A stretch of DNA of 64,000 nucleotides from Rebecca billardiae RCC1528. Lineage: Eukaryota; Protista; Haptophyta. The position numbers and the translations under genes were made by a program. Positions 1 through 26,883 of the stretch are shown here, in pieces. Position 1 is the first letter of the stretch, and each line of letters starts with the position of its first letter. The stretch spans positions 124,001 to 188,000 of the forward strand of contig OZ251222.1 in NCBI GenBank assembly GCA_965240325.2, read 5' to 3'. Below the pieces are notes generated by a model. That model worked only from the letters and a program-made list of their open reading frames with translations, had not been told where the DNA came from and did no database searches.

Positions 1-2041
1 GAGCGGACTTGCTCGACGGATTTCTTGATAATGTCCGATGCGCCAATGGGCGACACCTTTGTCGGGTATAACTTCAGGAATTCATCCCTGAGTTCGGACA
101 TAGTTGTGATCTTGAGCTCGCGCTCAAATATCTGTAGCAGCAGCGCCAGATCCAAGTAGTTCTTGGTCGGATCGCTGATGTGCAGCTTCGATTCCAGATA
201 GGCGAATAACTGAGGCTCAATAGAGTCCTTCAGCTGCTTGAATATCGCTGCCGCAGATCGATCGTAGACCGATCCGATCTTGTTGGCGTCAGCGTTGTCA
301 GCCTTGTATGGATCGATTTTGGCTGCGTCTTTCACCCATTTGTCTTTGGCAATGAGTTGAAAGCCGGATAGCTTGCTATCCTTGGGCTCCATTATGTCAG
401 GTGTGACATCTGAGGATTTGCCCTTGTAGTAGGTGCTCACTTCTGCGAGTGCATCCCGTATCGCGCTGTGTACCGCGCGCTTGGATTTCAGAGCCGACTG
501 TGTCAGCTTGTGTGTGGCGGGTGTATCCACTCCTGCCGAGGATTCGCGTGCCATGAACACACGTTCCTTCTTGGTTGGATTAGAGTCTGTGACTCCTCCT
601 TCGATGACTATCCAGTCACGTTTCTTCGACTCAAGTGCATTGGTCGATGTGTCGCGCGCGCTCTGTGGCGATTCGCGCTCTACCTTCGAGCGAGGAGTGA
701 CCCTCGTCGAGGCTGTGGTGCCTTCTTTGGGCTTCTTCACGCTCGTTCTGTCCAGCGGTGATGCATGTGCATCCGCGGCAGCTTCGGCGGAATACTCTTC
801 CTTGCAAGAGTGTGGCGTTGTGATGGCTGACGCAGCTGATGCATGCGCACGCGCGTCGCGCTCGCCAACTTGGTTTTGCTGCGGCTTTGCCGTCAAGCAG
901 GTGTATGATGCCCCCCCTGCATCGTATGCGCTTCCTACGTTCGACGCGAGTCGATACGTGCCAGACGAGGACTCTGCCGTCTCTGCGGCGGTCATCTCGC
1001 GGCTGCTTGTGTCGCTCGTGGCGAGCAGCTCGGCTTCGGAAGCCATCGTGAGGCCTGCGAGGGCCCCGTGAATTTTGGGGTAAACGTATTTGTTGGTCAT
1101 CTCCAAAAATACGATGGGTTTGGTTCGGCCCTGGCAATGAATATTGGGGCTGGTGCTCGCGGTGACTGAGTCACGCGTCGTAGCATCTTGGAGCATAGTT
1201 TGCTCTGCCAGACCATACAGGTCGTTTGAGTCGCACTCATCGGTGCTAATGTCATCGTTCGATCGGTCAGACTCAGACACAGAGTCGTGCGAGCGAGGCT
1301 GCAGACTGACTGCGGTCACGACCGCGCTGTCATTGGCGGCGGCCAGAAGGCCAGCACGCCGAGCAGCGTTGGCAGGCTCGAGGGCCTCGACGGTCGGAGC
1401 GGCATCAGCGGCAGCAGCGTCGAGCGCTACATCTGCCCCGGAACGCTCGGTGACCTCGTTCGATGACTCGGAGGCCGCAAGGCACTCCTTGAGCTGCGGG
1501 CTCTCCGAGCCGCGCGCTCTTGAACCGCGCTCGCGGGCGCAGAGTCCCGGGCGGTAGTTGTTGAGATCCCCTGCGCAACGACGTGCGTGCGGATGGAGTG
1601 GCGCGATGGCGGGGGATGCGAGCGGCAACGCTCCTCCTCACCGCGCTGTGCGCGAACCTCCTCCTCAAGGTGATCCTTGATGTCGGCTCGAGGCCTTGCG
1701 TGCGATGCAGCATTGCGCGCATACGACACGATGCTGCCTGAGTTCAGGTCAGCGATGTTGCCAGGCCCGGAGGCGCTGGAGATGGGCTTGCGGAGAAGCG
1801 TGAGCTTCTCGCCTTGCCGGTTCTTCTCAGCCTGCATGCCCCTCAGGGCAGCGGCGAGGTAGTCTGGCGTGCGCTTGCGCGCGATCGCCGATGAGCAGCG
1901 CGGCAATGCCGCGCGCTCTGCCACGCCTGGCTTCAACCCAATGAGGGGAGCAACTGGGGCGGGCTGATGGCCGTTCACGTCCTTGCCGCTGTTCTCGTCG
2001 TCTCCATCCTTGCCCAAGTTCTCCCAGCACCGTGCTAGCAT
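1..2041 (-). mobile_element. Long interrupted ORF running off the window edge; C-terminal part gag-like (possible LTR retrotransposon)
   Basis: One frame is open from about 1664 to the window edge (...MTNKYVYPKIHG...DRSAAAIFKQLKDSIEPQLFAYLESKLHISDPTKNYLDLALLLQIFERELKITTMSELRDEFLKLYP...). It overlaps ORF 1427-2041 in another frame. Lower GC than host genes; the helical pattern resembles retrotransposon gag. No LTR, PBS or pol identified. Confidence 0.4.
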
Positions 2042-2644
2042 GTCAGGGAACGCGTCTCGAGGCTTGACGGTCGCGAGGTCGGTCGACGGCTTCGGCTCTT
2101 ATTTGCGGTGGAGAGCTCAGCGTGTTTTGAGTGATCGGCTCATGTTTCGTTCACGAGTTTCGGAAGCATCTAGAATGCTTCCAGATGCCGCCGCCAGCCA
2201 TGCTGTCCTGCTGTATTTTAGGATGAGGTTCAGGTTGATTTTGGAGGATTTTGTGCGAGCGCCGCCGCAGCGGTCGCGCCGCCACTGTGTGACTGCGAGT
2301 AAAATGTTGGATTGGAAATTGGAAATCACTGTAGATTGGCGATTCCTTTGACACTATTATTAGTACCGACGGGCGACTCTGAGTCACTCACTGTACTCAG
2401 ATCGTCCGAGTGACCGAGTCCTTGAATTCAGAATCGGCATGCACTGCCGGCCTGCGAGTGCCAGGGCGGCCCGGACTCGGGTTATTATTGAGATACAAGC
2501 TTCTATAGAGCGCGGTGTGCCGTGTTCGCTTGAATCGTAAACGCTGACTCGGCTGACTGGCTGCCGGCGGAGCCTGCCAGCCAGGGCTCGTGGGCCCCGT
2601 GCATTGCAGATAGTGCTCCTGCGCCTCCCAGGGCTAGTGCCTAA

Positions 2645-3085
2645 CTAGTACCCATCGTCCGACCACGTGACTTTGTGGGAGGACAGCTCCTGTTCGCACA
2701 GACGTGCTGCAAGCGCATGGTCTGCCTTGCCAAAGCCGTAAGAGTGACCGTAGATCGACACAGTCTTGGCATCATCGTTGCGGTCGATACGGCCGCCTCC
2801 TGGAATCGAGGTCTGCAGGCCTGCAGCCTTCAGGGCCTCCACGTGCGGCGTGGCCACGTCCACGTGATAGTTCCCAGGGCCGGAACGGACGAGCGTTTTG
2901 GCCACACTCCCATCTGGCGCCATGATGTTGATGAGCACGTACTTGTAGAGGCCGTTCGCAACTTGGACTGCAGGCCACTGGTCCAGGCTGCCAACTGATG
3001 AGGTCGCAGCACGCGCGCCCTCAGCACGCAGCGCAGCAGCACGCGCCTGGTCTTCGGCGTTGGTCGTCGGCCCACTTTCCGCCAT
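2645..3085 (-). CDS. PHPT1: 14-kDa phosphohistidine phosphatase (Janus/Ocnus family)
   Basis: GLYKYVLI...YHVD...GGGRI...IYGHSYGFGKADH...VTWSDDGY family motifs; ATG at 3085. Confidence 0.92.
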   Translation of the reverse strand: MAESGPTTNAEDQARAAALRAEGARAATSSVGSLDQWPAVQVANGLYKYVLINIMAPDGSVAKTLVRSGPGNYHVDVATPHVEALKAAGLQTSIPGGGRIDRNDDAKTVSIYGHSYGFGKADHALAARLCEQELSSHKVTWSDDGY

Positions 3086-3298
3086 TGTGACCACAGGAGC
3101 GAGCCCGAAGTGGCGCGAGCGCGGGTTCAACACGCCGCCGCGCGCGGCGGCTACACACAGGCAGAGCAGCGCCGTGGCGGCGGCGGATCCAGGTCGGGTG
3201 ACAAGACCACGGACTCCGCCGAAGACTTCACTACTGTCTTCAGTGCGCTTTCGGCTTTCCGTCCGGAATTCCGGGGCTCGCCTGCACACGTAATCAGC

Positions 3299-4312
3299 AT
3301 GGCCGGGCAAAACGATGGCCGCTATGTCACACTCCTGATCGCTCTTGCCGGCCCAGCCGCCGGCGTCGTCCCGATGGTGACCCTCTCGAGTGGCCATCGC
3401 ATGCCTGCTCTCGCCTTTGGTACTGCCGATGCCAAGCAGCTCGCCCGCTCTCTGCACCACGCGTTGGGCCGTGGCTTCCGACACGTTGACTCCGCGCCCA
3501 TGTACAATACCGAAGGTGTGGTCGGCCGTCAGCTGCGCAAGGCTTTCGCGGCAGGGCTCGCCCGAAGCGACTTGTGGGTGACATCGAAGCTGAACAACGA
3601 CATGCACGCGCCAGCAGACGTGCCGCGTGCCCTGAACAAGTCGCTTGCCGCCCTCCGCCTGGATTACGTCGACCTGTTCCTCATCCACTGGCCAATCGCG
3701 TCGGATCAGAAGCTGCGGCCCATCCGGGATTTGCGGCGCTGGCCTTCGATCGAGAAGACGTGGAGGGCAATGGAGGGGCTCGTGCGCGCCGGGCTCGCGC
3801 GTAATATTGGCGTAAGCAACTTCGGGCCGAAGCGGCTCCGCGCACTCGTGAGCACGGCCACGATCCGGCCTGCCGTGAACCAGGTGGAGCTCAACCCGTG
3901 CTGGCGGGATGACGCGCTCGTCGCCGAGGCCGCGAGGCTTGGCGTCCATCTGATCGCCTACTCGCCGCTCGGCGGATACTTCCACGGTGGCAAGGCGGGG
4001 CAACGCGTCCACCTGCTACAGCTGCCTGCGGTGACTGAGATTGCGCAGCAATTGGGACGCACACCGGCGCAGGTCGTGCTGAGATGGGGCATCCAGCGCG
4101 GCACGTCCGCTGTGAGCGCATCGAGGAGTCCATCGCACCTGGACAGCAACATTGAGATCGCCGACTTTGCCCTTAGCAGGCAGCAGATGCGCCTGCTGTC
4201 GTCCATCGAGCCACAGCAGCGCTTGACCTCGGCTGGATTCGCGCGCATGATGCTCGGCCACAACCGGACATCACCGCCAACATTGATGACGGTAGACGAG
4301 CTGCTTGCCTAG
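3299..4312 (+). CDS. Aldo-keto reductase
   Basis: GFRHVDSAPMYNTE, LWVTSKL, DYVDLFLIHWP, IGVSNF, PAVNQVELNP, AYSPLG, PAQVVLRW. Confidence 0.93.
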   Translation: MAGQNDGRYVTLLIALAGPAAGVVPMVTLSSGHRMPALAFGTADAKQLARSLHHALGRGFRHVDSAPMYNTEGVVGRQLRKAFAAGLARSDLWVTSKLNNDMHAPADVPRALNKSLAALRLDYVDLFLIHWPIASDQKLRPIRDLRRWPSIEKTWRAMEGLVRAGLARNIGVSNFGPKRLRALVSTATIRPAVNQVELNPCWRDDALVAEAARLGVHLIAYSPLGGYFHGGKAGQRVHLLQLPAVTEIAQQLGRTPAQVVLRWGIQRGTSAVSASRSPSHLDSNIEIADFALSRQQMRLLSSIEPQQRLTSAGFARMMLGHNRTSPPTLMTVDELLA

Positions 4313-18336: not shown

Positions 18337-19683
18337 TCAGTCGCCGGCCGGCGGCGCGAGGAACACCTTGCCCTGCTGCGCGAGGTGGGCGAGCGCGGCT
18401 GCGAGTGCCGGGCACTCGTTGAGCATCAAGTCGGCGGGCATGACGGGGTTCTCGCGGCAGATCAGGCTCGCCGCGCGCACGACGGCCTCGCCCGCATCCC
18501 CCGACAGGTCGTGCGCATGCCCATCCACGAAGAGCATGGCCCCACCACCAGCCGGCTGGGCGCCCGCTGGGGCGGCATCGAGGGCGCTGCCGCGCGCGAA
18601 CGCGAACGTGACGCCCTCGGCGCGCCACAGCGCGAGGCCGCGGGATGCCTCGCGCGCGCCGTCCGCGTCTGCGCGCCTCGCCGCGTCCGCCAGCAGCGCC
18701 GGGCTGTCCACGCCCTCGTGGTCGCCCTCAAACTCCAGGGGGAGGCGCCATCTCTCCGTGAGCTGCTCGCCGAGCCACGCGCGCACGAGCCGTGGGTCGT
18801 CGAGCACGGTGCTCAGCTTGGCGCGCATCATCTCGGTGAGCGCCTCGAACGCCTCCGCCGAGATCTCCCCGCCCTCCTCCGACGCCGCGCCGCCGGGCAG
18901 CAGCGCCTCGGAGAAGAAGTCGTCCTCTGCGCACCGCGCGCCCGCCAGCTCGCCGAGCGCTCTGAGCAGGTTGGCGCGCTTGGGCGCGCGGTAGCCGATG
19001 GAGTAGGTCATGCACTGGTCGTCGAGGGAGACGCCGCGGTGGGGGATGCGCGGCGGGAGGTAGAGGCAGTCGCCCGCCTCGAGCACCCAGCTCCTGTCCG
19101 GCGCGAACTCGCGGAGGACGCGCACGGCGAGGCCGTCCACCAGCTCCTCCGCGTCGGCCGGGCGCAGGCGCTCCTCGATGCACCAGCGGCGGCGGCCCGA
19201 GCCCTGCAGGAGGAAGACGTCGTAGTTGTCCGTGTGCGCGCCGATCCCGCCGTCGGGTGCGGCGTACGAGACCATCACGTCGTCCGTGCGCCAGTCGGGC
19301 ACGAGCGCGAACCGGCGCTGCAGGAGCGCGGCCACCTGCGGGTGCACAATGTTCACTTCATTTACTAACAGCGTCCAGCGCTCCTCGGGCAGCATGGCGA
19401 AGTCCTTGTCGTCGAAGGGGCCGTGCAAGAGCGCCCACGGCGTGTCGCCGATGCCTCGCTCACAGATGATCCGCGCCTCCACCCCCTCCTCGCACGCGAT
19501 GCCGGCGAGCTCGTCCGGCGTCAGGATGTCCGCCTCTGACGGCTCGAGCATGCCGCGGATCAGCAGCGGGCGCCGGCCCCAGAAGTCACGCATGAACTCA
19601 GCGCGGCGCGCGCGGGGGAAGCCCTGCCACTCGCCCGCCGGCGCGTGCGTGACGCCCGCGACGCACGCCACGAGGAGGAGCAT
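18337..19683 (-). CDS. roxA: JmjC/cupin-4 ribosomal oxygenase, RoxA(YcfD)-like uL16 hydroxylase
   Basis: FMRDFWGRRPLLIRG, WTLLVNEV, WRTDDVMVSYA..GGIGAHTDNYDVFLLQGSGRRRW, GDCLYLPPRIPHRG, CMTYSIGYRAP; hydrophobic N-terminus. Confidence 0.88.
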   Translation of the reverse strand: MLLLVACVAGVTHAPAGEWQGFPRARRAEFMRDFWGRRPLLIRGMLEPSEADILTPDELAGIACEEGVEARIICERGIGDTPWALLHGPFDDKDFAMLPEERWTLLVNEVNIVHPQVAALLQRRFALVPDWRTDDVMVSYAAPDGGIGAHTDNYDVFLLQGSGRRRWCIEERLRPADAEELVDGLAVRVLREFAPDRSWVLEAGDCLYLPPRIPHRGVSLDDQCMTYSIGYRAPKRANLLRALGELAGARCAEDDFFSEALLPGGAASEEGGEISAEAFEALTEMMRAKLSTVLDDPRLVRAWLGEQLTERWRLPLEFEGDHEGVDSPALLADAARRADADGAREASRGLALWRAEGVTFAFARGSALDAAPAGAQPAGGGAMLFVDGHAHDLSGDAGEAVVRAASLICRENPVMPADLMLNECPALAAALAHLAQQGKVFLAPPAGD

Positions 19684-19818
19684 GGGACCGGCGACGCGTG
19701 CGGGCCGTCGTCGGGCGGGTACGCCGCGTGGCCGTGCAAAGCCGGCAGCGGCACAGCCGGCTGGTCCCGGAGGCTTCATCCGGTTGCCACATTAAGCCTT
19801 GACCACCTGCCACATTAA

Positions 19819-21344
19819 GGTGGCACGGCAGGAAACCGCCGGACTGCGACGTAACAGCCATGGCTGCCGCGTGCGCACGCCGATTGGGGGCTCGTGCGCG
19901 CCGAGCGCGTACAGCACGGTCCGGAGCGCATGCCGGGTGGTCAAAGCACGTGCGCCGGCCTCCTGGCCCGCCCCCTGATGAGCTCGTCGCGTCTCTCCTC
20001 ACGCTCCAGCCGTGGACCAGCGTGCACACGTGCGGGTCGGCTGGCGAGCTGCAGACGCGGTGGATGCGCTGCATGGTTTGTGCGCCACTGGCCGCCCAGA
20101 TGGTCAGAGCGTACGGGGGTGGGCGTGCACACGTGCGTCCAGTCGTTTGAACCGCGCGCCGAGGCTGTTTTGGAGGTGTGCACCTACTCGCGGATGTCGG
20201 CGGCACTCCGTGGGCAGCCCGTGGGGCCACAGAAGCCACGGCGGGCAGCATTCGGGCGAGATGTACACGGCCCCATGGCGGCAGGGAGCGCTCTGTGCGT
20301 ACGCTACGGGTCCCGCCGAGGTCAGTGATACGGGCTTCGCCTGTGTCCGTGGCTAGAACAGGCTGCTCGGGGGCCCACGGATCACCGCCCATGGTGCTGG
20401 TGGCCCCGGCGCCCCAGAGTAGGCTATACGCGGCATGCCAAAACTAGAAATCTGACATAGAACTTCAACCGGGACCCTAGCTACTCTCGAGCCCTTCCCA
20501 TAAGCTGTGTTCAGCCAGCTCGGCATGCGAATCGTATTGCACGTTTTGAAATTAACACGAAAATGGTCCAAAATCGGCGATTTTGGACCATTTTCGTGTT
20601 AATTTCAAAACGTGCAATACGATTCGCATGCCGACCTGGCTGAACACAGCTCATGGGAAGGGCTCGAGAGTAGCTAGGGTCCCGGTTGAAGTTCTATGTC
20701 AGATTTCTAGTTTTGGCATGCCGCGTATAGCCTACAGCCTACTCCGGGGCGCTGGGGCCACCAGCACCATGCACGGTGATCCGCGGACCCCCGAGCAGGG
20801 TGATCAGGCCACATACCCAGGCGAAGCCCGTATCAATGACCTCGGCGGGACCCGTAGCGTACGCACAGAGCGCTCCCTGCCGTCATGGGGCCATGTACAT
20901 CTCGCCCGAATGCACTGCCCGCCGTGGCTTCTGTGGCCCCACGGGCTGCCCACGGAGTGCCGCCGACATCCGCGAGTAGGTGCTCACCTCCAAATCACCC
21001 TCGGCGCGCGGTTCAAACGACTGGACGCACGTGTGCACGTCCGCCCCCGTACGCCCTGACCATCTGGGCGGCCAGTGGCGCACATACCATGCAGCGCATC
21101 CACCGCGTCTGCAGCTCGCCAGCCGACCGGCACGTGTGCACGCTGGTCCACGGCTGGAGCGTGAGGAGAGACGCGACGAGCTCATCAGGGGGCGAGCCAG
21201 GAGGCCGAAGCCTGTGCTTCGACCACCCGGCATGCGCTCCGGACCGTGCCGTACGCGGTCGGCGCGCACGAGCCTCGAATCGGCGCGCGCAAGCGGCACC
21301 CATGGCTGTTACGTCGCAGTCCGGCGGTTTCCTGCCGTGCCACC
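19819..21344. mobile_element. 1.5-kb foldback (whole-element palindrome) with TTAA TSD and GG..CC termini (Kolobok-like)
   Basis: Arms of about 760 bp centred on G20577 (CCAAAATCG-G-CGATTTTGG); TTAA at 19815-19818 and 21345-21348. Confidence 0.88.
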
Positions 21345-21399
21345 TTAAGGGCCCCGCGACCGGCTGCCACATTAAGGCGACCGGCTGCCACATTAAGGA

Positions 21400-23550
21400 T
21401 CCGCGCCAACGCTCGCACGGCCACCGACACGCCACGCGCGGAGCGATGCGCCGATGGTCTTCGGCTCGGTCGCAAACGTCCTGAACCGCGCTGGCCTGTT
21501 CAGTCGCCCTTTGCTCGACGCAGTCGTGCACTGGCCGGTGGAGGCAGTGGCGCCGGGCGTCGGGAAGCACTTCGAGTTCCTCGGTGAGGCTGGCGAGCCC
21601 GCGCCCGACAAGAAGTAGCGCGGCGGCGCGTGCGCGCCGTGCTCGCGGTGACGTACGTGCTGCTCGCGAAGGGAAAGCAGTTCAAGCAGGGACACCTCGA
21701 GCACTCGGCAGATTATCTCGCCTTGCTCGCCGCTGACGGCCAGCGTGCGAAGCGCGCTGCTGGCATACACGGCGTTGAGCAGGTCACCGTGCGAGAGTGC
21801 TCCGTCAGACCCGTGGCCAAGGCCCTTGTCGATCAGCTGCGCTGAAGGGCGCGCGCAAGAGTGCGTGATGGAGGTCAGTTCCAGGCAGGCTCCATGTTGG
21901 CTGCAGCGCTGCGTCTGCGCAGCATGCCCCCGCACGCGCGTCTGCACGCGCACGGCTGCGCTGAGCTGCAAGTTGCGCTCGAGCTCAGCCTTGAGCGCGC
22001 TCAGCGTGCCCTTCAGCAGCTCGAGCGGTTCCTCCTTGCGCCACGCGTCCGCGTGGCGCCGCGAGTAGTTGCTTGTTCAGCGGCTGCACCTGCACCGCCG
22101 CGCGCTCGACGCTCGCCTCGACCACCTCCGCGCGCACGCGCTCGCCGACGCGCTCCAGGGACTGCTGCGTAAGCTCGTGCGCACAGTGGAGCGCCGGAGC
22201 GACACCTCCGCGCCATCCACCGCGCTTATCGCCTGGCTGGGCGCTATGGAGAGCTACACGCGCGCCGGGGGCGCGAGCCCGACGACGCATTCGCAGTTCA
22301 CCTCGCTGTACGACGAACGCCACCTCGAGCGCACGAGCGCATGCGTCTGCAGCGGGAGCACCGACGGCCGCTCCGGTGGGCTCGCCGCCGACTTCCCCAG
22401 TAGTAACCAGCATATCAAAGTCGTCCTCGGTAGCGCGCGAGGCTCGCTACAATACGGTGATGCTACACCACATGGTTTGCGTCACACGCAGCACCACATG
22501 GGTGGCCGGCAGCGGCGTACCATCGGCTGAGCTGTTCCTGAGTCACTGTTCCTCTGCAGAGACGTGCGCGCGTCGACGAGCACTTGCGCGCTCTGCGGCC
22601 TTCGGCACCTTGACACCTTGACATCATTGCGCGTGCGCATGACAGGCGCGGATGGTTGCGCACTTGCGTGTCCGTCGGCGGCGCGCACGATCCGCGAGTA
22701 CCGTCCGCCGGGGCCTTGCCATTGTCGACCTTGGACGGCGCACGTCGCACCGCGGCGCGCTTGCGGCCTTCGGTCGGGTAGCCCTCGCTGGACATGTGCT
22801 GGCCTCTGTTGCTCCGCTGCTCATCGGACCGGGTGCCAATCAGTGGCCCACAATTGACGACCCGTGCGCCTGCCCCGCATGCTCGCACACGGGATGACGC
22901 AGCCTGGAGCCACCCCGGTCGAGATTTCGGGATGTCAAAGCAGTGGCCGAGCATGCGCTCAAGCGCTCTCATCCTCATGGAGCGTGACCTCTACCGTTCT
23001 ACCGTCTGGGCGTCTGCCGTCACAGGAGTCGGACAAGTCCCCAAAGCTGGGTGCAACCAGTCCCTCGGGAGTAGCCGCCAGGCCTCCCGCCACCCCCGCA
23101 GCCGCGCCGCCCAGGGTTGTGAGTCCTGGGATTACGCGGGGTGGTCAGGCTGGCGCGCACGCTCGCGGAACCTTGGAACCCGCGCTCCCGCGCTGCGTCG
23201 CGTGTCACCCCTCGATCGCCGCCCCACCGCCACCTCTTCCCTCCCATCACCACCTCTTCCTCGACATCCTCGGCCTTCGCCGCAGCACCGACGCCCCCGC
23301 GCGCGGCCGCTGTGGCAGCGTGCGATCAGCGTGCGCTGCGCCGCCGCGCCGCCGCGCCGCCCAGAGTTGTGCAGCGCGGCCTGTGAGTCCTGCGAGCTGC
23401 CCTGTGTGGTCAGGCTGGTACGCACGCTCGCTAACGCTTCGAACACGCGCTGCATCGCGTGTCGCCCCTCGATCGCCGCCCCACCGCCGCGTTTTCCTCC
23501 ACGCACGGCGGCCGTCGCCGCAGCACGAGAGCCCCGCGCGCGGGCAGCGC
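21400..23550 (-). pseudogene. Frameshifted gene fragments inside the MULE-like element (IQ motif, coiled coil, internal duplication)
   Basis: LKAELERNLQLSAAVRVQTRVRGHAAQ IQ-like motif near 21930-22000; frameshifts; diverged direct repeat at about 23141-23231 vs 23406-23488. Confidence 0.45.
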
Positions 23551-23736
23551 GCCTTAATGTGGTGGCGGGATCCTTAATGTGGCAGTGGTCAACCGGCTGC
23601 CACATTATAAGGCTTAATGTGGTGGCGGGATTCGGCTTAATGTGGTAACCGGCTGAAGTCGGTCCCGGAGCAGCAGTCTGAAGATGGCGACCGCCGCGGC
23701 GGCCTCGTGGACCGGGAGTCCAAGACCACGAGCGCG

Positions 23737-26700
23737 ATGGCTCCTCTCGCCACCGCCGCCGCGATCGCGTGCATGCTCGGCTCTGCGGCGGCCTCGCGCG
23801 TCGGCCTCCCGGTCCGCGCGCCCGTCCCGCGCCCCGCCCTGCCGAGGATGGCCGCCCCTTCGCCGGACTCGCCGGACGATTGGAAGAGCGAGCGCGCGCT
23901 GCGCTCGCGCAAGCACACGGAGCTGTACACGGGTCTGGCCGCGGGCGCGGGCGAGACGAGCGGCAACGCGGGCGCTGCCCCACGGTCCGAGGGCGCCGTG
24001 CACGCCTCGCCGCCCGAGATCCTCGCGCCCGCGGGCGGCTGGCCGCAGCTGCGCGCCGCGATCGCGGCGGGCGCGGACGCATGCTACTTTGGCTGCGCCG
24101 AGGGGCTCAACGCGCGCGCGCGCGCGTCCAACTTTGGGCTGGACGAGCTGGGCGACGTGATGCGCGAGCTGCACGAGCACGGCATGCGCGGCTACCTCTG
24201 CGTCAACGTCCTCGTCTTCGACGAGGAGCTGGCCAGCGGCGCGCCCGAGAGGCTGATCCGAGCGGCGGCCGAGGCCGGCGTCGACGCGTTGATCGTGCAG
24301 GACGCGGGCGTGGCGCAGCTCGCCCGGCGCGTGGCGCCCGAGCTCGAGGTGCACGCCTCGACCCAGCAGAGCGTGACCGACGGCTACGGCGCGCTGCACG
24401 CGGTGCGCACCGCCGGCGCGAGCACCGTCGTCGTCGGCCGCGAGCTCTCCCTCGACGAGGTGGCCGCGGTGCGCAGCACGCTCGACACACACGGCCATGC
24501 GGACGTGGCCCTTGAGGTGTTCGTGCACGGCGCGCTGTGCGTGTCGTACTCGGGGCAGTGCTTCTCCTCCGAGGCGTGGGGCGGGCGCTCCGCCAACCGC
24601 GGCCAGTGCGCGCAGGCGTGCCGCATGCCGTACGGCCTCCTCGTCGACGGCGCCCTGCACTCCTTGCTTGAGCAGCAGTACCTGCTCAGCCCGCAGGACC
24701 TGTGCGCGCTCGAGCTGGTGCCGCAACTCGTGCGCGCGGGCGCGCGCACGCTCAAGATCGAGGGGCGGCTGAAGGGGCCGGAGTACGTGTACGCGACGAC
24801 GCGCGCGTACCGCGCCGCCGTCGACGAGGCGTGGGCGGCGCTCGCGCCCGCGCCCGCCGCCGAGCCCACCGGCGCGCGCGCGGACGAGGCGAGCGCGGCC
24901 GTGGCGGCGGGCGGCGCCGCCGCCGTGCGCGAGCGAGTCCTCGACCCGTGGGTGCCCTCGCGCCCGGAGCTTGCCGCGCTGTTCGCGCGCGCGCAGGATG
25001 CGCGGCATGACGGGCTGAGCGCAGGCTTCCTCAACGGGCCGCGTCACCAGTCGCTCGTGCGCGCGCGCACGCCTGGGCACCGCGGCGTGCTCGTGGGCCG
25101 CGTGGCGGCGCGGCCGCGCACCGCTCCGGCCGCGGCCGTGGCGGTCGAGATCGCGCAGCCCGTGCGCCGCGGCGACGGCGTGGTGTTCGACGAGCCCTCC
25201 GCGTACGAGGCCGCGCGCGGCGAGCTCGGCGGCGCGGTGTACGACGTGCTGGACCCGACGACCTCGCAGCCCGTGCCCCCCGACGCGCAGGAGGCCGGCA
25301 GCACCTACCTCCTCACGTTTGCGACCGAGAGCGGCGGCGCGCTCGGCTCGGTGCGGCCGGGGCAGCACGTGTGGCGCACGCGCGACGCGAGCGTGGAGAA
25401 GGCGGTCGCGAGCCGGCTCGCGCGCGCGGACGAGCTCGGCCGCGAGCGCGTGCGCGTGCGCGTGCGCGGCGCCCTCGGAGCGCCCCTCACACTCGAGCTC
25501 ACCGACGCGGCGGGGCGGCGCGCGGAGGGCCGCACGCAGAGCGCGCTGGAGCGCAGCACGCGCGACGCCTCCGGCGCCTCCGACGCCGCCGACGGCGACG
25601 CGCTCGCCGCCGCCGCGCTGAAGGCCGTGGGCGACCTCGGTGGCACGGCCCTCGCACTCGGCAGTGCGGACGCGGCCGAGCTCGCCCCGGGCCTGCACGT
25701 CCCCCTGCGCGAGATCAAGGCGGCGCGGCGCGCGGCCCTCGACGCGCTGCTCGAGGCGCGGCGCGCGCCGCCGCCGCGCGCCGCGCCGCCGCACGCCTCG
25801 CCGCCGCCGCGCGCGCCGCACGCTGACGGCTCGGCGGGCGGCGAGGGCGCGAGGGCGGCGGCGCCTGCTGCGCGCGCGCGCCGCTCGGCGGCGTCGCCCT
25901 CGCGCGCGCCGCTCGCCGCCGTGCGCCTCTCCGTGCTCTGCCGCACGCCGGCGCAGGTGGAGGCGCTCACGCTGCTGCCCGCGGCCGTGCGCGCCGGCTC
26001 GGCCGTGGACGAGATCGTGTGCGACCACCTTGAGATGCGCGGGATGGAGGCGTCGGTGGCGCGCGTGCGCGCGTCGGGGCTGCGCGCCGTCGTCGCCGCG
26101 CCGCGCGTGATCAAGCCCGCCGAGGCCGGCCTGTGGCGCGTCCTCGCCGACGCCGGCGCCGACGCCATCCTGGTGCGCTCGGCGGGGCTGCTTCTGCAGC
26201 TGGCGCACGAGCGCTCGCGCGCGCGGCCCGAGGACCCGCTCTCGCGCGTCGCACTGCACGGCGACTTCAGCCTGGGCGTGGCCAACGCGGACTCGGCGCG
26301 GCTGCTGCTCGACTCGGGGCTCGAGCGGGTCACGCCGACGCACGACTGCAACTCGGCGCAGCTCGAGGCGATCGCGCGCCGGCTGGGCGCGGACGGCGCG
26401 CGCCGCATCGAGCCGATCGTGCACACGCACGTGCCCATCTTCCACACCGACTACTGCGTGTTTGCGCGCACGCTCTCCGAGGGCGAGAGCTACCGGGACT
26501 GCGGCCACCCGTGCGAGCGGCACAGCCTGCACCTGCGCACGGCGGAGGGCGCGGACAATCTCGTGCTCGCAGACATGGGCTGCCGAAACACCGTGTTCAA
26601 CGCGGAGGCTCAGTCCGGCGCGCGGCACGTGCGCGGCTGGGCGGACGCGGGGATCACGCGGCTGCGCATCGAGCTGGTGGACGAGCCGGCGCACGTCGCG

Positions 26701-26883
26701 GTGCGCCTCGTCCAGGCGTACATGGACCTGCTCGCCGGCGCGGCCACGCACGACGACATTTTTGACTTTGTGCGCCGCGAGGCGACCGACTCGAACGGCC
26801 GGCTACACGGCGTGGGCGAAGGCAGCTTGCGCGTCAAGCGCGAGCGCGAGTGGTCCTCGCTGAAGCGCACTGCGCGCGGCTGA
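23737..26883 (+). CDS. Long peptidase U32-family protein (RlhA/YdcP-like RNA hydroxylase), probably plastid-targeted
   Basis: PEILAPAG, GADACYFG, NARARASNF, VHASTQ, EVFVHGALCVSYSGQCFSS..GGRSANRGQCAQACR, LKIEGRLKGPEYV; second degenerate barrel with YCVF..CGHPC..GCRNTVFN; bipartite presequence. Confidence 0.88.
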   Translation: MAPLATAAAIACMLGSAAASRVGLPVRAPVPRPALPRMAAPSPDSPDDWKSERALRSRKHTELYTGLAAGAGETSGNAGAAPRSEGAVHASPPEILAPAGGWPQLRAAIAAGADACYFGCAEGLNARARASNFGLDELGDVMRELHEHGMRGYLCVNVLVFDEELASGAPERLIRAAAEAGVDALIVQDAGVAQLARRVAPELEVHASTQQSVTDGYGALHAVRTAGASTVVVGRELSLDEVAAVRSTLDTHGHADVALEVFVHGALCVSYSGQCFSSEAWGGRSANRGQCAQACRMPYGLLVDGALHSLLEQQYLLSPQDLCALELVPQLVRAGARTLKIEGRLKGPEYVYATTRAYRAAVDEAWAALAPAPAAEPTGARADEASAAVAAGGAAAVRERVLDPWVPSRPELAALFARAQDARHDGLSAGFLNGPRHQSLVRARTPGHRGVLVGRVAARPRTAPAAAVAVEIAQPVRRGDGVVFDEPSAYEAARGELGGAVYDVLDPTTSQPVPPDAQEAGSTYLLTFATESGGALGSVRPGQHVWRTRDASVEKAVASRLARADELGRERVRVRVRGALGAPLTLELTDAAGRRAEGRTQSALERSTRDASGASDAADGDALAAAALKAVGDLGGTALALGSADAAELAPGLHVPLREIKAARRAALDALLEARRAPPPRAAPPHASPPPRAPHADGSAGGEGARAAAPAARARRSAASPSRAPLAAVRLSVLCRTPAQVEALTLLPAAVRAGSAVDEIVCDHLEMRGMEASVARVRASGLRAVVAAPRVIKPAEAGLWRVLADAGADAILVRSAGLLLQLAHERSRARPEDPLSRVALHGDFSLGVANADSARLLLDSGLERVTPTHDCNSAQLEAIARRLGADGARRIEPIVHTHVPIFHTDYCVFARTLSEGESYRDCGHPCERHSLHLRTAEGADNLVLADMGCRNTVFNAEAQSGARHVRGWADAGITRLRIELVDEPAHVAVRLVQAYMDLLAGAATHDDIFDFVRREATDSNGRLHGVGEGSLRVKREREWSSLKRTARG

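Follow-up and report, generated by a model that had tools for sequence, protein, structure and literature searches.

The Pack-MULEs and Pack-TYPE transposons have been described from plants (Jiang et al. 2004, as far as it is reported in PMC12477816; PMC8903248; PMC13317346), and neither the Pack-TYPE survey nor the gene-capture review (PMC8903248, PMC13317346) mentions algae. From Phaeodactylum a Mutator-like element (MULE) is known which duplicates its target site over 9 bp (target site duplication, TSD) and has terminal inverted repeats (TIRs) of about 200 bp and which has been shown to move; the same study treats the 9-bp TSD as typical of an algal MULE (bioRxiv 10.1101/2023.01.02.522487). 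Ectocarpus harbours families which carry only non-transposase genes and were called "analogous to Pack-MULE" (PMC12477816). Here we analyse an element of 3889 bp from Rebecca billardiae RCC1528, located in a 64,000-nt stretch of contig OZ251222.1 (positions 124,001 to 188,000). This whole stretch is called the window, and coordinates without prefix refer to it. The 72-Mb assembly with its 41 contigs was the genome searched for copies; C-numbers denote contigs of this assembly and L-numbers the segments extracted for single copies or loci. The best explanation as a whole, to which we assign a probability of roughly 0.8, is that positions 19772-23660 represent a copy of a mobile non-autonomous cut-and-paste family making 9-bp staggered-cut duplications. 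In anatomy and behaviour this family is a Pack-type DNA transposon: it has no coding capacity for a transposase, it holds a host-gene fragment with an identifiable parent, and its TIRs and TSDs at multiple loci demonstrate transposition.

The element at this locus is built from the following parts:

19772-23660, plus strand: whole composite element of 3889 bp, a 2.36-kb non-autonomous TIR transposon with a nested 1.53-kb foldback
19763-19771, no strand: left TSD of 9 bp, GGTCCCGGA, exact match to 23661-23669
23661-23669, no strand: right TSD of 9 bp, GGTCCCGGA, exact match to the left copy
19772-19798, plus strand: left TIR of 27 bp, identical at 24 of 27 positions to the reverse complement of 23634-23660
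23634-23660, minus strand: right TIR of 27 bp, pairing with the left TIR at 24 of 27 positions
19786-19819, plus strand: left subterminal repeats 1 and 2 (GCCACATTAAG), the outer half of a four-repeat block
21349-21397, plus strand: left subterminal repeats 3 and 4 of the host element, pushed 1.53 kb inward by the nested insertion
23553-23645, minus strand: right subterminal repeat block with four inverted CCACATTAAG and one degenerate forward copy at 23599-23611
23094-23540, plus strand: internal imperfect tandem duplication of about 250-265 bp, seen as direct repeats in the window and with the same self-matches in every copy

The sequence-only reading of this stretch, made before any database search, had described imperfect TIRs of 27 bp, a perfect 9-bp TSD and four repeats at each end, and all three were confirmed. 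The ends are complementary at 78% over 46 nt, with 27 bp as the strict TIR. All eight CCACATTAAG repeats were found, at 19787, 19810, 21367 and 21388 on the plus strand and at 23553, 23573, 23613 and 23636 on the minus strand. Allowing up to one mismatch, the window contains 11 matches to CCACATTAAG while 0.81 are expected, and none of 100 shuffled sequences reached this number. In the host element four repeats fall within about 105-110 bp at each end, the spacers differing between the two ends. Canonical copies elsewhere in the genome, which are about 2.35 kb long, align to the window copy in two parts, positions 1-48 and 1566-3888; in such uninterrupted copies the left repeat block is contiguous, with its four repeats within about 100 bp.

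In total the genome contains about 19 copies of this family, and the same ends are present at about 16 loci besides the window. The 19-nt terminal motif has 32 exact matches in the genome, all of which are either arranged in inverted pairs 2.3-3.9 kb apart or belong to obvious fragments; at three mismatches the motif is no commoner than a control pattern and hence at background level. A 2.1-kb query from the interior retrieved 19 genomic matches of at least 1.1 kb at 90-100% identity. Junctions were read at 16 extracted loci, and 12 full-length copies were assessed for TSDs. Perfect 9-bp TSDs, all different from each other, surround ten out of these twelve, so that the genome-wide search for the TIR with 9-bp TSDs, which had been suggested as a check, gave a positive result. 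Comparing the junctions also showed that the flanks of the copies are mutually unrelated. In an alignment of 17 copies the pairwise divergence is 0.1-1.0% among members of one sub-family and reaches up to 5% when different sub-families are compared, and the copy in the window differs by only 0.1% from C8:2729440-2733311 (L038). The low divergence within sub-families (0.1-1%) therefore indicates recent activity.

Two derivatives with rearranged ends were observed among the family members. At C26:539626-539669 (L061:327-370) both family TIRs stand back to back within 44 bp, with the junction CCACATTAA/TGTGG, and no 9-bp TSD could be recognised around this TIR-TIR unit. By its sequence it is to be regarded as an extreme internal-deletion derivative of the family. 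In the copy at C1:1795816 the first 48 bp, comprising the TIR and two repeats, are tandemly duplicated at the left end (L032:1018-1113), and here the 9-bp TSD surrounds the outer unit of the duplicated end.

The interior of the element had been thought to consist of decayed coding fragments unrelated to a transposase, and this proved correct, as we found a myosin fragment and a broken frame but no Pfam transposase; none of the internal open reading frames (ORFs) of the window element has a Pfam match. Two features are concerned:

21659-22224, minus strand: captured host-gene fragment, the 3' end of a myosin heavy-chain gene, at element positions 1887-2452; coding-derived at about 21880-22224
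21393-22413, minus strand: remains of a 350-codon open frame, now two ORFs (192 and 142 aa) owing to a 1-bp insertion

In the DNA search with the interior, one substantial match outside the family was obtained, C8:1223727-1225229. The cargo aligns to it in reverse orientation with 84% identity over 581 nt, and the segment is present once more inside this locus, with 87% identity over 277 nt; on the amino acid level the identity to the myosin is 77% over 82 residues. Other matches, at C8:1068909 and C38:777880, are short and weak and cover the right half of the cargo. An intact parental gene, for which a search had likewise been recommended, is thus present as a myosin gene on contig 8 with 84-87% nucleotide identity. 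Its ORF (L066:3213-7505, corresponding to C8:1220712-1225004) encodes 1430 aa with a complete Myosin_head domain (PF00063, 578.6 bits). The cargo comprises the ~115 terminal codons of the myosin and continues past its stop codon for ~225 bp of 3' flank; therefore genomic DNA was copied and not a protein motif. Between cargo and parent the synonymous divergence (dS) is 0.30 and the non-synonymous divergence (dN) 0.12. Because this exceeds the divergence of the family and the fragment is present in every one of the ~19 copies, we conclude that there was a single capture before amplification and not one at the window locus. The capture itself, as proposed from the sequence alone, is thus supported, while its placement at this locus is not, since all ~19 copies share the cargo. 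Read most simply, a stretch of genomic sequence at the 3' end of the myosin gene was copied once into an ancestral element and then amplified together with the family.

The 350-codon frame is open in six copies, which belong to other sub-families. However, a coding function had to be rejected, because the variable columns among the 17 aligned copies are spread evenly over codon positions 1, 2 and 3 (43/38/47) and frameshifting indels are frequent (10 of 17 copies). We infer from this pattern that the frame derived from myosin does not serve for coding. For genome annotation this means that "orphan ORFs" within the family should not be annotated as genes.

Compared with the plant Pack-MULEs, the family agrees in being a non-autonomous TIR element without transposase and with 9-bp TSDs, in carrying a host-gene fragment (the myosin 3' end) between its ends while the parent gene still exists elsewhere, and in having been amplified after the capture, with some copies at gene 5' ends. 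It differs in its TIR of only 27 bp, which is accompanied by short subterminal repeats and unmatched to the MULEs of the same genome, and in having one identifiable captured fragment that makes up ~570 bp of 2.36 kb. Further, there is one family with a single shared cargo instead of many independent captures, and the host is not a land plant but a GC-rich, intron-poor eukaryote. With the Phaeodactylum MULE the family shares the 9-bp TSD and the recent mobility, but the former has TIRs of ~200 bp and itself codes for a MULE/SWIM transposase. In Ectocarpus the families are of giant size and contain whole transcribed genes, whereas the family studied here is small and contains a decayed fragment. 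Two aspects are modestly unusual, namely the occurrence of young copies without a cognate transposase and the repeated nesting of foldbacks in the subterminal repeats. The family thus provides a clean example of the Pack type on the family level outside land plants, in which the donor gene is identified and the capture is dated relative to the amplification.

To which superfamily the cognate transposase belongs is less certain than the Pack-type nature of the family. MULE transposases were searched over the genome with the PF10551 profile, and two loci were found, one on contig 23 and one on contig 10. The locus on contig 23 (L059:2266-6031, C23:326265-330030) is an apparently intact MULE of 3.77 kb with 124-bp TIRs (99%) and a PF10551 ORF of 1037 aa; it sits among satellite repeats of the CCGCAG(G/C)CCTGCGG type, which form a long array. 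As it is flanked by a perfect 9-bp TSD (CCGCAGGCA), the MULE transposases of this genome make 9-bp duplications. The locus on contig 10 (L060:373-8782) extends over ~8.4 kb and has complex inverted ends of several hundred bp with a palindromic TTAAATCAGCCCGGGCTGA motif; its MULE-domain ORF is split over several frames and a clear TSD is missing. Both loci were rejected as autonomous partners, their ends being unrelated and without the motif. A transposase hidden beside solo or truncated ends of the family (L040, L045) was considered as well and rejected, since the ORFs found there have no matches; the 1012-aa ORF next to a solo right end encodes an alanine-rich, host-like protein without Pfam family.

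Of the other superfamilies, hAT elements duplicate 8 bp and CACTA and PIF elements 3 bp, and Merlin elements make TSDs of 8-9 bp. In all ten informative copies the duplication is 9 bp and not the 8 bp of hAT elements, and the 9 bp typical for Mutator (range 8-11) were seen in ten of the twelve full copies. A Merlin origin was rejected, as the profile for the Merlin/IS1595 DDE domain (PF12762), which covers IS1595/IS1016-type transposases, has no match in the 72-Mb assembly. We therefore prefer a MULE, because the TSD is exactly 9 bp, the transposase-bearing MULE of this genome has a TSD of equal length and no Merlin DDE was detected, and on these sequence characters the cognate transposase probably belongs to the Mutator/MULE superfamily. 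According to the proposed mechanism a DDE transposase acting in trans would bind the four CCACATTAAG repeats of each end and cut at the 27-bp TIRs.

A number of observations weigh against the proposed family history, most of them against its Mutator part. The two PF10551 loci share neither their termini nor CCACATTAAG with the family, and the MULE census is based on a single Pfam model. A longer element with the family TIR was not found with the 19-nt pattern at up to three mismatches genome-wide, and paired clusters of the subterminal repeats yielded only the 2.35-kb family and its fragments. A divergence of 0.1% between copies implies a recent source of transposase, and yet no partner was found. 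The TIR is short (27 bp, 24/27) when compared to the 100 bp or more of many MULEs and Pack-MULEs. Finally, two of the twelve full copies (L038 and L041) lack a TSD. A MuDR transposase partner, for which a search had been suggested, was thus found neither at the two PF10551 loci nor in a longer element. Mutator affinity is therefore a matter of TSD length and exclusion, whereas the defining connection with a MULE transposase did not hold in these comparisons. Of the label given in the sequence-only reading, "Pack" can be kept and "MULE" depends on TSD length, with ends that match neither MULE locus.

Alternatively the family could belong to another superfamily: its transposase, DDE or other, might be of a kind not yet described, or the family might be a lineage similar to P, hAT or Merlin elements in which the TSD is atypical with 9 bp. 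Besides the missing cognate MULE and the unrelated ends of both MULE loci, the combination of a short TIR with multiple short subterminal repeats is in favour of this assumption, as many hAT, CACTA and P elements are built in this way, too. However, a TSD of exactly 9 bp in ten independent insertions, the bona fide MULE of the same genome that makes a 9-bp TSD, and the lack of a detectable IS1595/Merlin DDE in the assembly make it rather unlikely. If it applied, "Pack-MULE" would be the wrong name and "Pack-type" still valid. Very young copies without a cognate transposase are a puzzle through which cross-mobilisation becomes testable.

The element copy lies between two divergent genes, both of which turn their 5' end towards it:

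18337-19686, minus strand: left neighbour, a JmjC_2 (RoxA-like) gene (PF08007, E 6e-31)
23737-26883, plus strand: right neighbour, a Peptidase_U32 + DUF3656 gene (PF01136, E 1.4e-78)

Once the element and one copy of the TSD are removed, the start codons of the JmjC and U32 genes are ~152 bp apart, which agrees with the ~155 bp estimated earlier, and 85 bp and 67 bp of the original spacer remain, one piece on each side of the element. This copy was inserted into the ~150-bp spacer which separated the two genes. With respect to annotation, the ~4-kb spacer between JmjC and U32 is transposon DNA and not regulatory sequence belonging to either gene. Within the left TIR there is an ATG on the minus strand (19779-19777) which is in frame with the JmjC ORF, 31 codons upstream of its likely start, and a transcript starting in the element could lead to an N-terminally extended JmjC protein. 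The copies L039, L041 and L044 likewise adjoin a coding-like ORF at its 5' end, L041 even on both sides, and these ORFs have a high GC content at third codon positions; the arrangement faintly recalls the preference of MULEs for 5' ends.

These positions raise the question whether the JmjC and U32 genes now draw promoter activity from the ends of the element, after the insertion had split a shared bidirectional promoter of ~150 bp. This idea is based on geometry: both genes face the element 5'-first with 85 and 67 bp of original spacer left, the ATG of the left TIR is in frame with JmjC, and three other copies (L039, L041, L044) are next to the 5' end of a coding-like ORF. On the other hand, the residual 67-85 bp on each side may suffice as core promoters in a compact genome, and the in-frame ATG carries little weight, since at about 70% GC few stop codons occur. 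We consider a promoter role of the ends unlikely.

Concerning the cargo, the direction of transfer could in principle have been the reverse, with the myosin having gained its duplicated tail segment and its 3' end from the transposon family by exonisation. Following the motor domain, the donor myosin consists of IQ-like repeats and a coiled-coil tail with a near-identical internal duplication. The segment corresponding to the cargo is found twice in this myosin, at approximately residues 359-498 and 670-764 when counted in its C-terminal stretch of 780 residues (L049:163-2505), and the 82-codon blocks that were compared between the tail duplicates show no synonymous difference, which suggests a very recent duplication or gene conversion. 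That this segment occurs twice in the myosin ORF in virtually identical copies, and that the homology covers the 3' end of the gene plus its flank, where an insertion might supply a new terminus, could be taken as signs of exonisation. However, the segment is in frame within a 1430-aa ORF with a full motor and an IQ-like neck, and it reads like the heptads of a normal coiled coil that passes without a break into the neighbouring sequence. Of the element, positions 1887-2452 alone have a match at the myosin locus, and neither a TIR nor a subterminal repeat nor any other part of the element was found there; the dN/dS of 0.4 fits one constrained and one neutral lineage. We therefore hold to the capture of myosin DNA by the transposon and regard the opposite direction as very improbable. 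A protein atlas search with the myosin tail returned only generic IQ and myosin-tail look-alikes.

An origin without mobility, by assembly artefact or segmental duplication, is effectively refuted, for although a 1.5-kb near-perfect palindrome such as that of the nested foldback might in principle be a long-read chimera and two copies have no TSD, ten different perfect 9-bp TSDs at unrelated loci, unrelated flanks around the copies, and palindrome arms which differ by 1-10%, with the same arm differences in copies on other contigs, are opposed to it.

The palindrome inside the window copy is a transposon of its own:

19819-21344, no strand: nested palindromic non-coding foldback transposon of 1526 bp with the termini GGTGGCAC...GTGCCACC
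19815-19818, no strand: left copy of the TTAA target duplication of the foldback, inside subterminal repeat 2
21345-21348, no strand: right copy of the TTAA target duplication of the foldback

Its arms are 90-99% complementary around a 1-nt centre near 20577. A query with one arm gave 42 matches in the genome, mostly in back-to-back pairs, and nine full copies with 86-99% identity were found elsewhere (contigs 1, 3, 14, 24, 30 and 39). TTAA is present on at least one side in all nine and on both sides in seven, with unrelated sequence beyond; in the two one-sided copies the opposite side reads TTAG (L055) or a shortened TTA (L058). The canonical copies of the host element lack positions 49-1565 of the window copy. 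Positions 19819-21344 are thus an independent foldback transposon which duplicates TTAA and is distinct from the host element. It was inserted, after the host element had landed, into the TTAA of the second left CCACATTAAG repeat. The split of the left repeats, with two near 197xx and two near 213xx, is due to this nesting in the second CCACATTAAG; the description of the locus as one element with split left repeats was therefore right about the repeats, but not about a single element, since a foldback guest with TTAA duplication is nested in a host of another kind with a 9-bp TSD. As the left arm does not differ from C24:493294-494050 (100% identity), the nesting is also recent. A near-repeat CCACCTTAAG at 21340-21349 was considered as a fifth subterminal repeat and rejected, as it consists of the foldback end and its TTAA.

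The foldback resembles the piggyBac-type TTAA non-autonomous foldbacks in having TTAA on both sides in nearly all copies and in being non-coding with long inverted arms, but the TTAA duplication alone does not separate piggyBac from Kolobok-type elements. Three loci with a piggyBac-type DDE domain (PF13843) are present in the genome (C37:611123-612004, C19:841155-842036 and C1:2181275-2182144), with open frames of 524-585 aa. They were rejected as partners of the foldback because no GGTGGCAC foldback end adjoins them: in the whole genome none of the 37 TTAAGGTGGCAC ends is near one of the three loci, and all of these ends are arranged in pairs of ~1.5 kb.

Large insertions are also found in other copies of the family. 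Those of L038, L043 and L031 were compared with the palindrome of the window and differ from it. L038 and L043 contain a second foldback family of ~1.5 kb with 24 nt between the arms (L038:1088-2599 on contig 8 and L043:3285-4794 on contig 16), which shares the first eight terminal bases GGTGGCAC with the window foldback but has an unrelated interior. The foldback in L038 occupies exactly the same TTAA as that of the window, and the one in L043 a TTAA of the right repeat block. The insert in the copy at C1:929723 (L031:3272-4759), 1.49 kb long and located just inside the right repeat block, is unrelated; its inverted ends CCACTGGG...CCCAGTGG are short, a long inverted repeat and a clear TSD are missing, and it represents a third type among the nested elements.

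A canonical copy has eight TTAA sites, and all of them fall within the subterminal repeats. Assuming ~20 elements which choose TTAA uniformly, about 0.05 foldback insertions into the family repeats are expected while three were found (Poisson P about 2e-5); this is a rough estimate, as the TTAA density of the window was extrapolated and selection against genic insertions ignored. The target TGCCACATTAA is similar to the foldback end plus TTAA, GTGCCACCTTAA. However, the other insertion sites of the foldback show no such similarity, and therefore TTAA density alone may explain part of the repeat-targeting effect. The subterminal repeats are thus a statistically unusual landing site for TTAA foldbacks and a testable puzzle. 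One may combine these observations into the picture of an orphan, recently active Pack-type family, for which a nearly complete assembly contains no transposase-encoding element with the same ends, and which would be mobilised by a MULE transposase with unrelated ends or by an unrecognised transposase and whose CCACATTAAG repeats would be a homing site for foldbacks; that all parts of this picture are true together seems unlikely to us.

Smaller insertions were observed in subterminal TTAA sites, too. The degenerate repeat at 23599-23611 of the window has a TA insertion and reads TTATAA, and the same TTATAA is present in L038. In L043, the left terminus of which is missing, TTATTAA is found at the hot-spot site (L043:1049-1063). 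Both variants may have been left behind when TTAA elements were excised, or they may be simple mutations.

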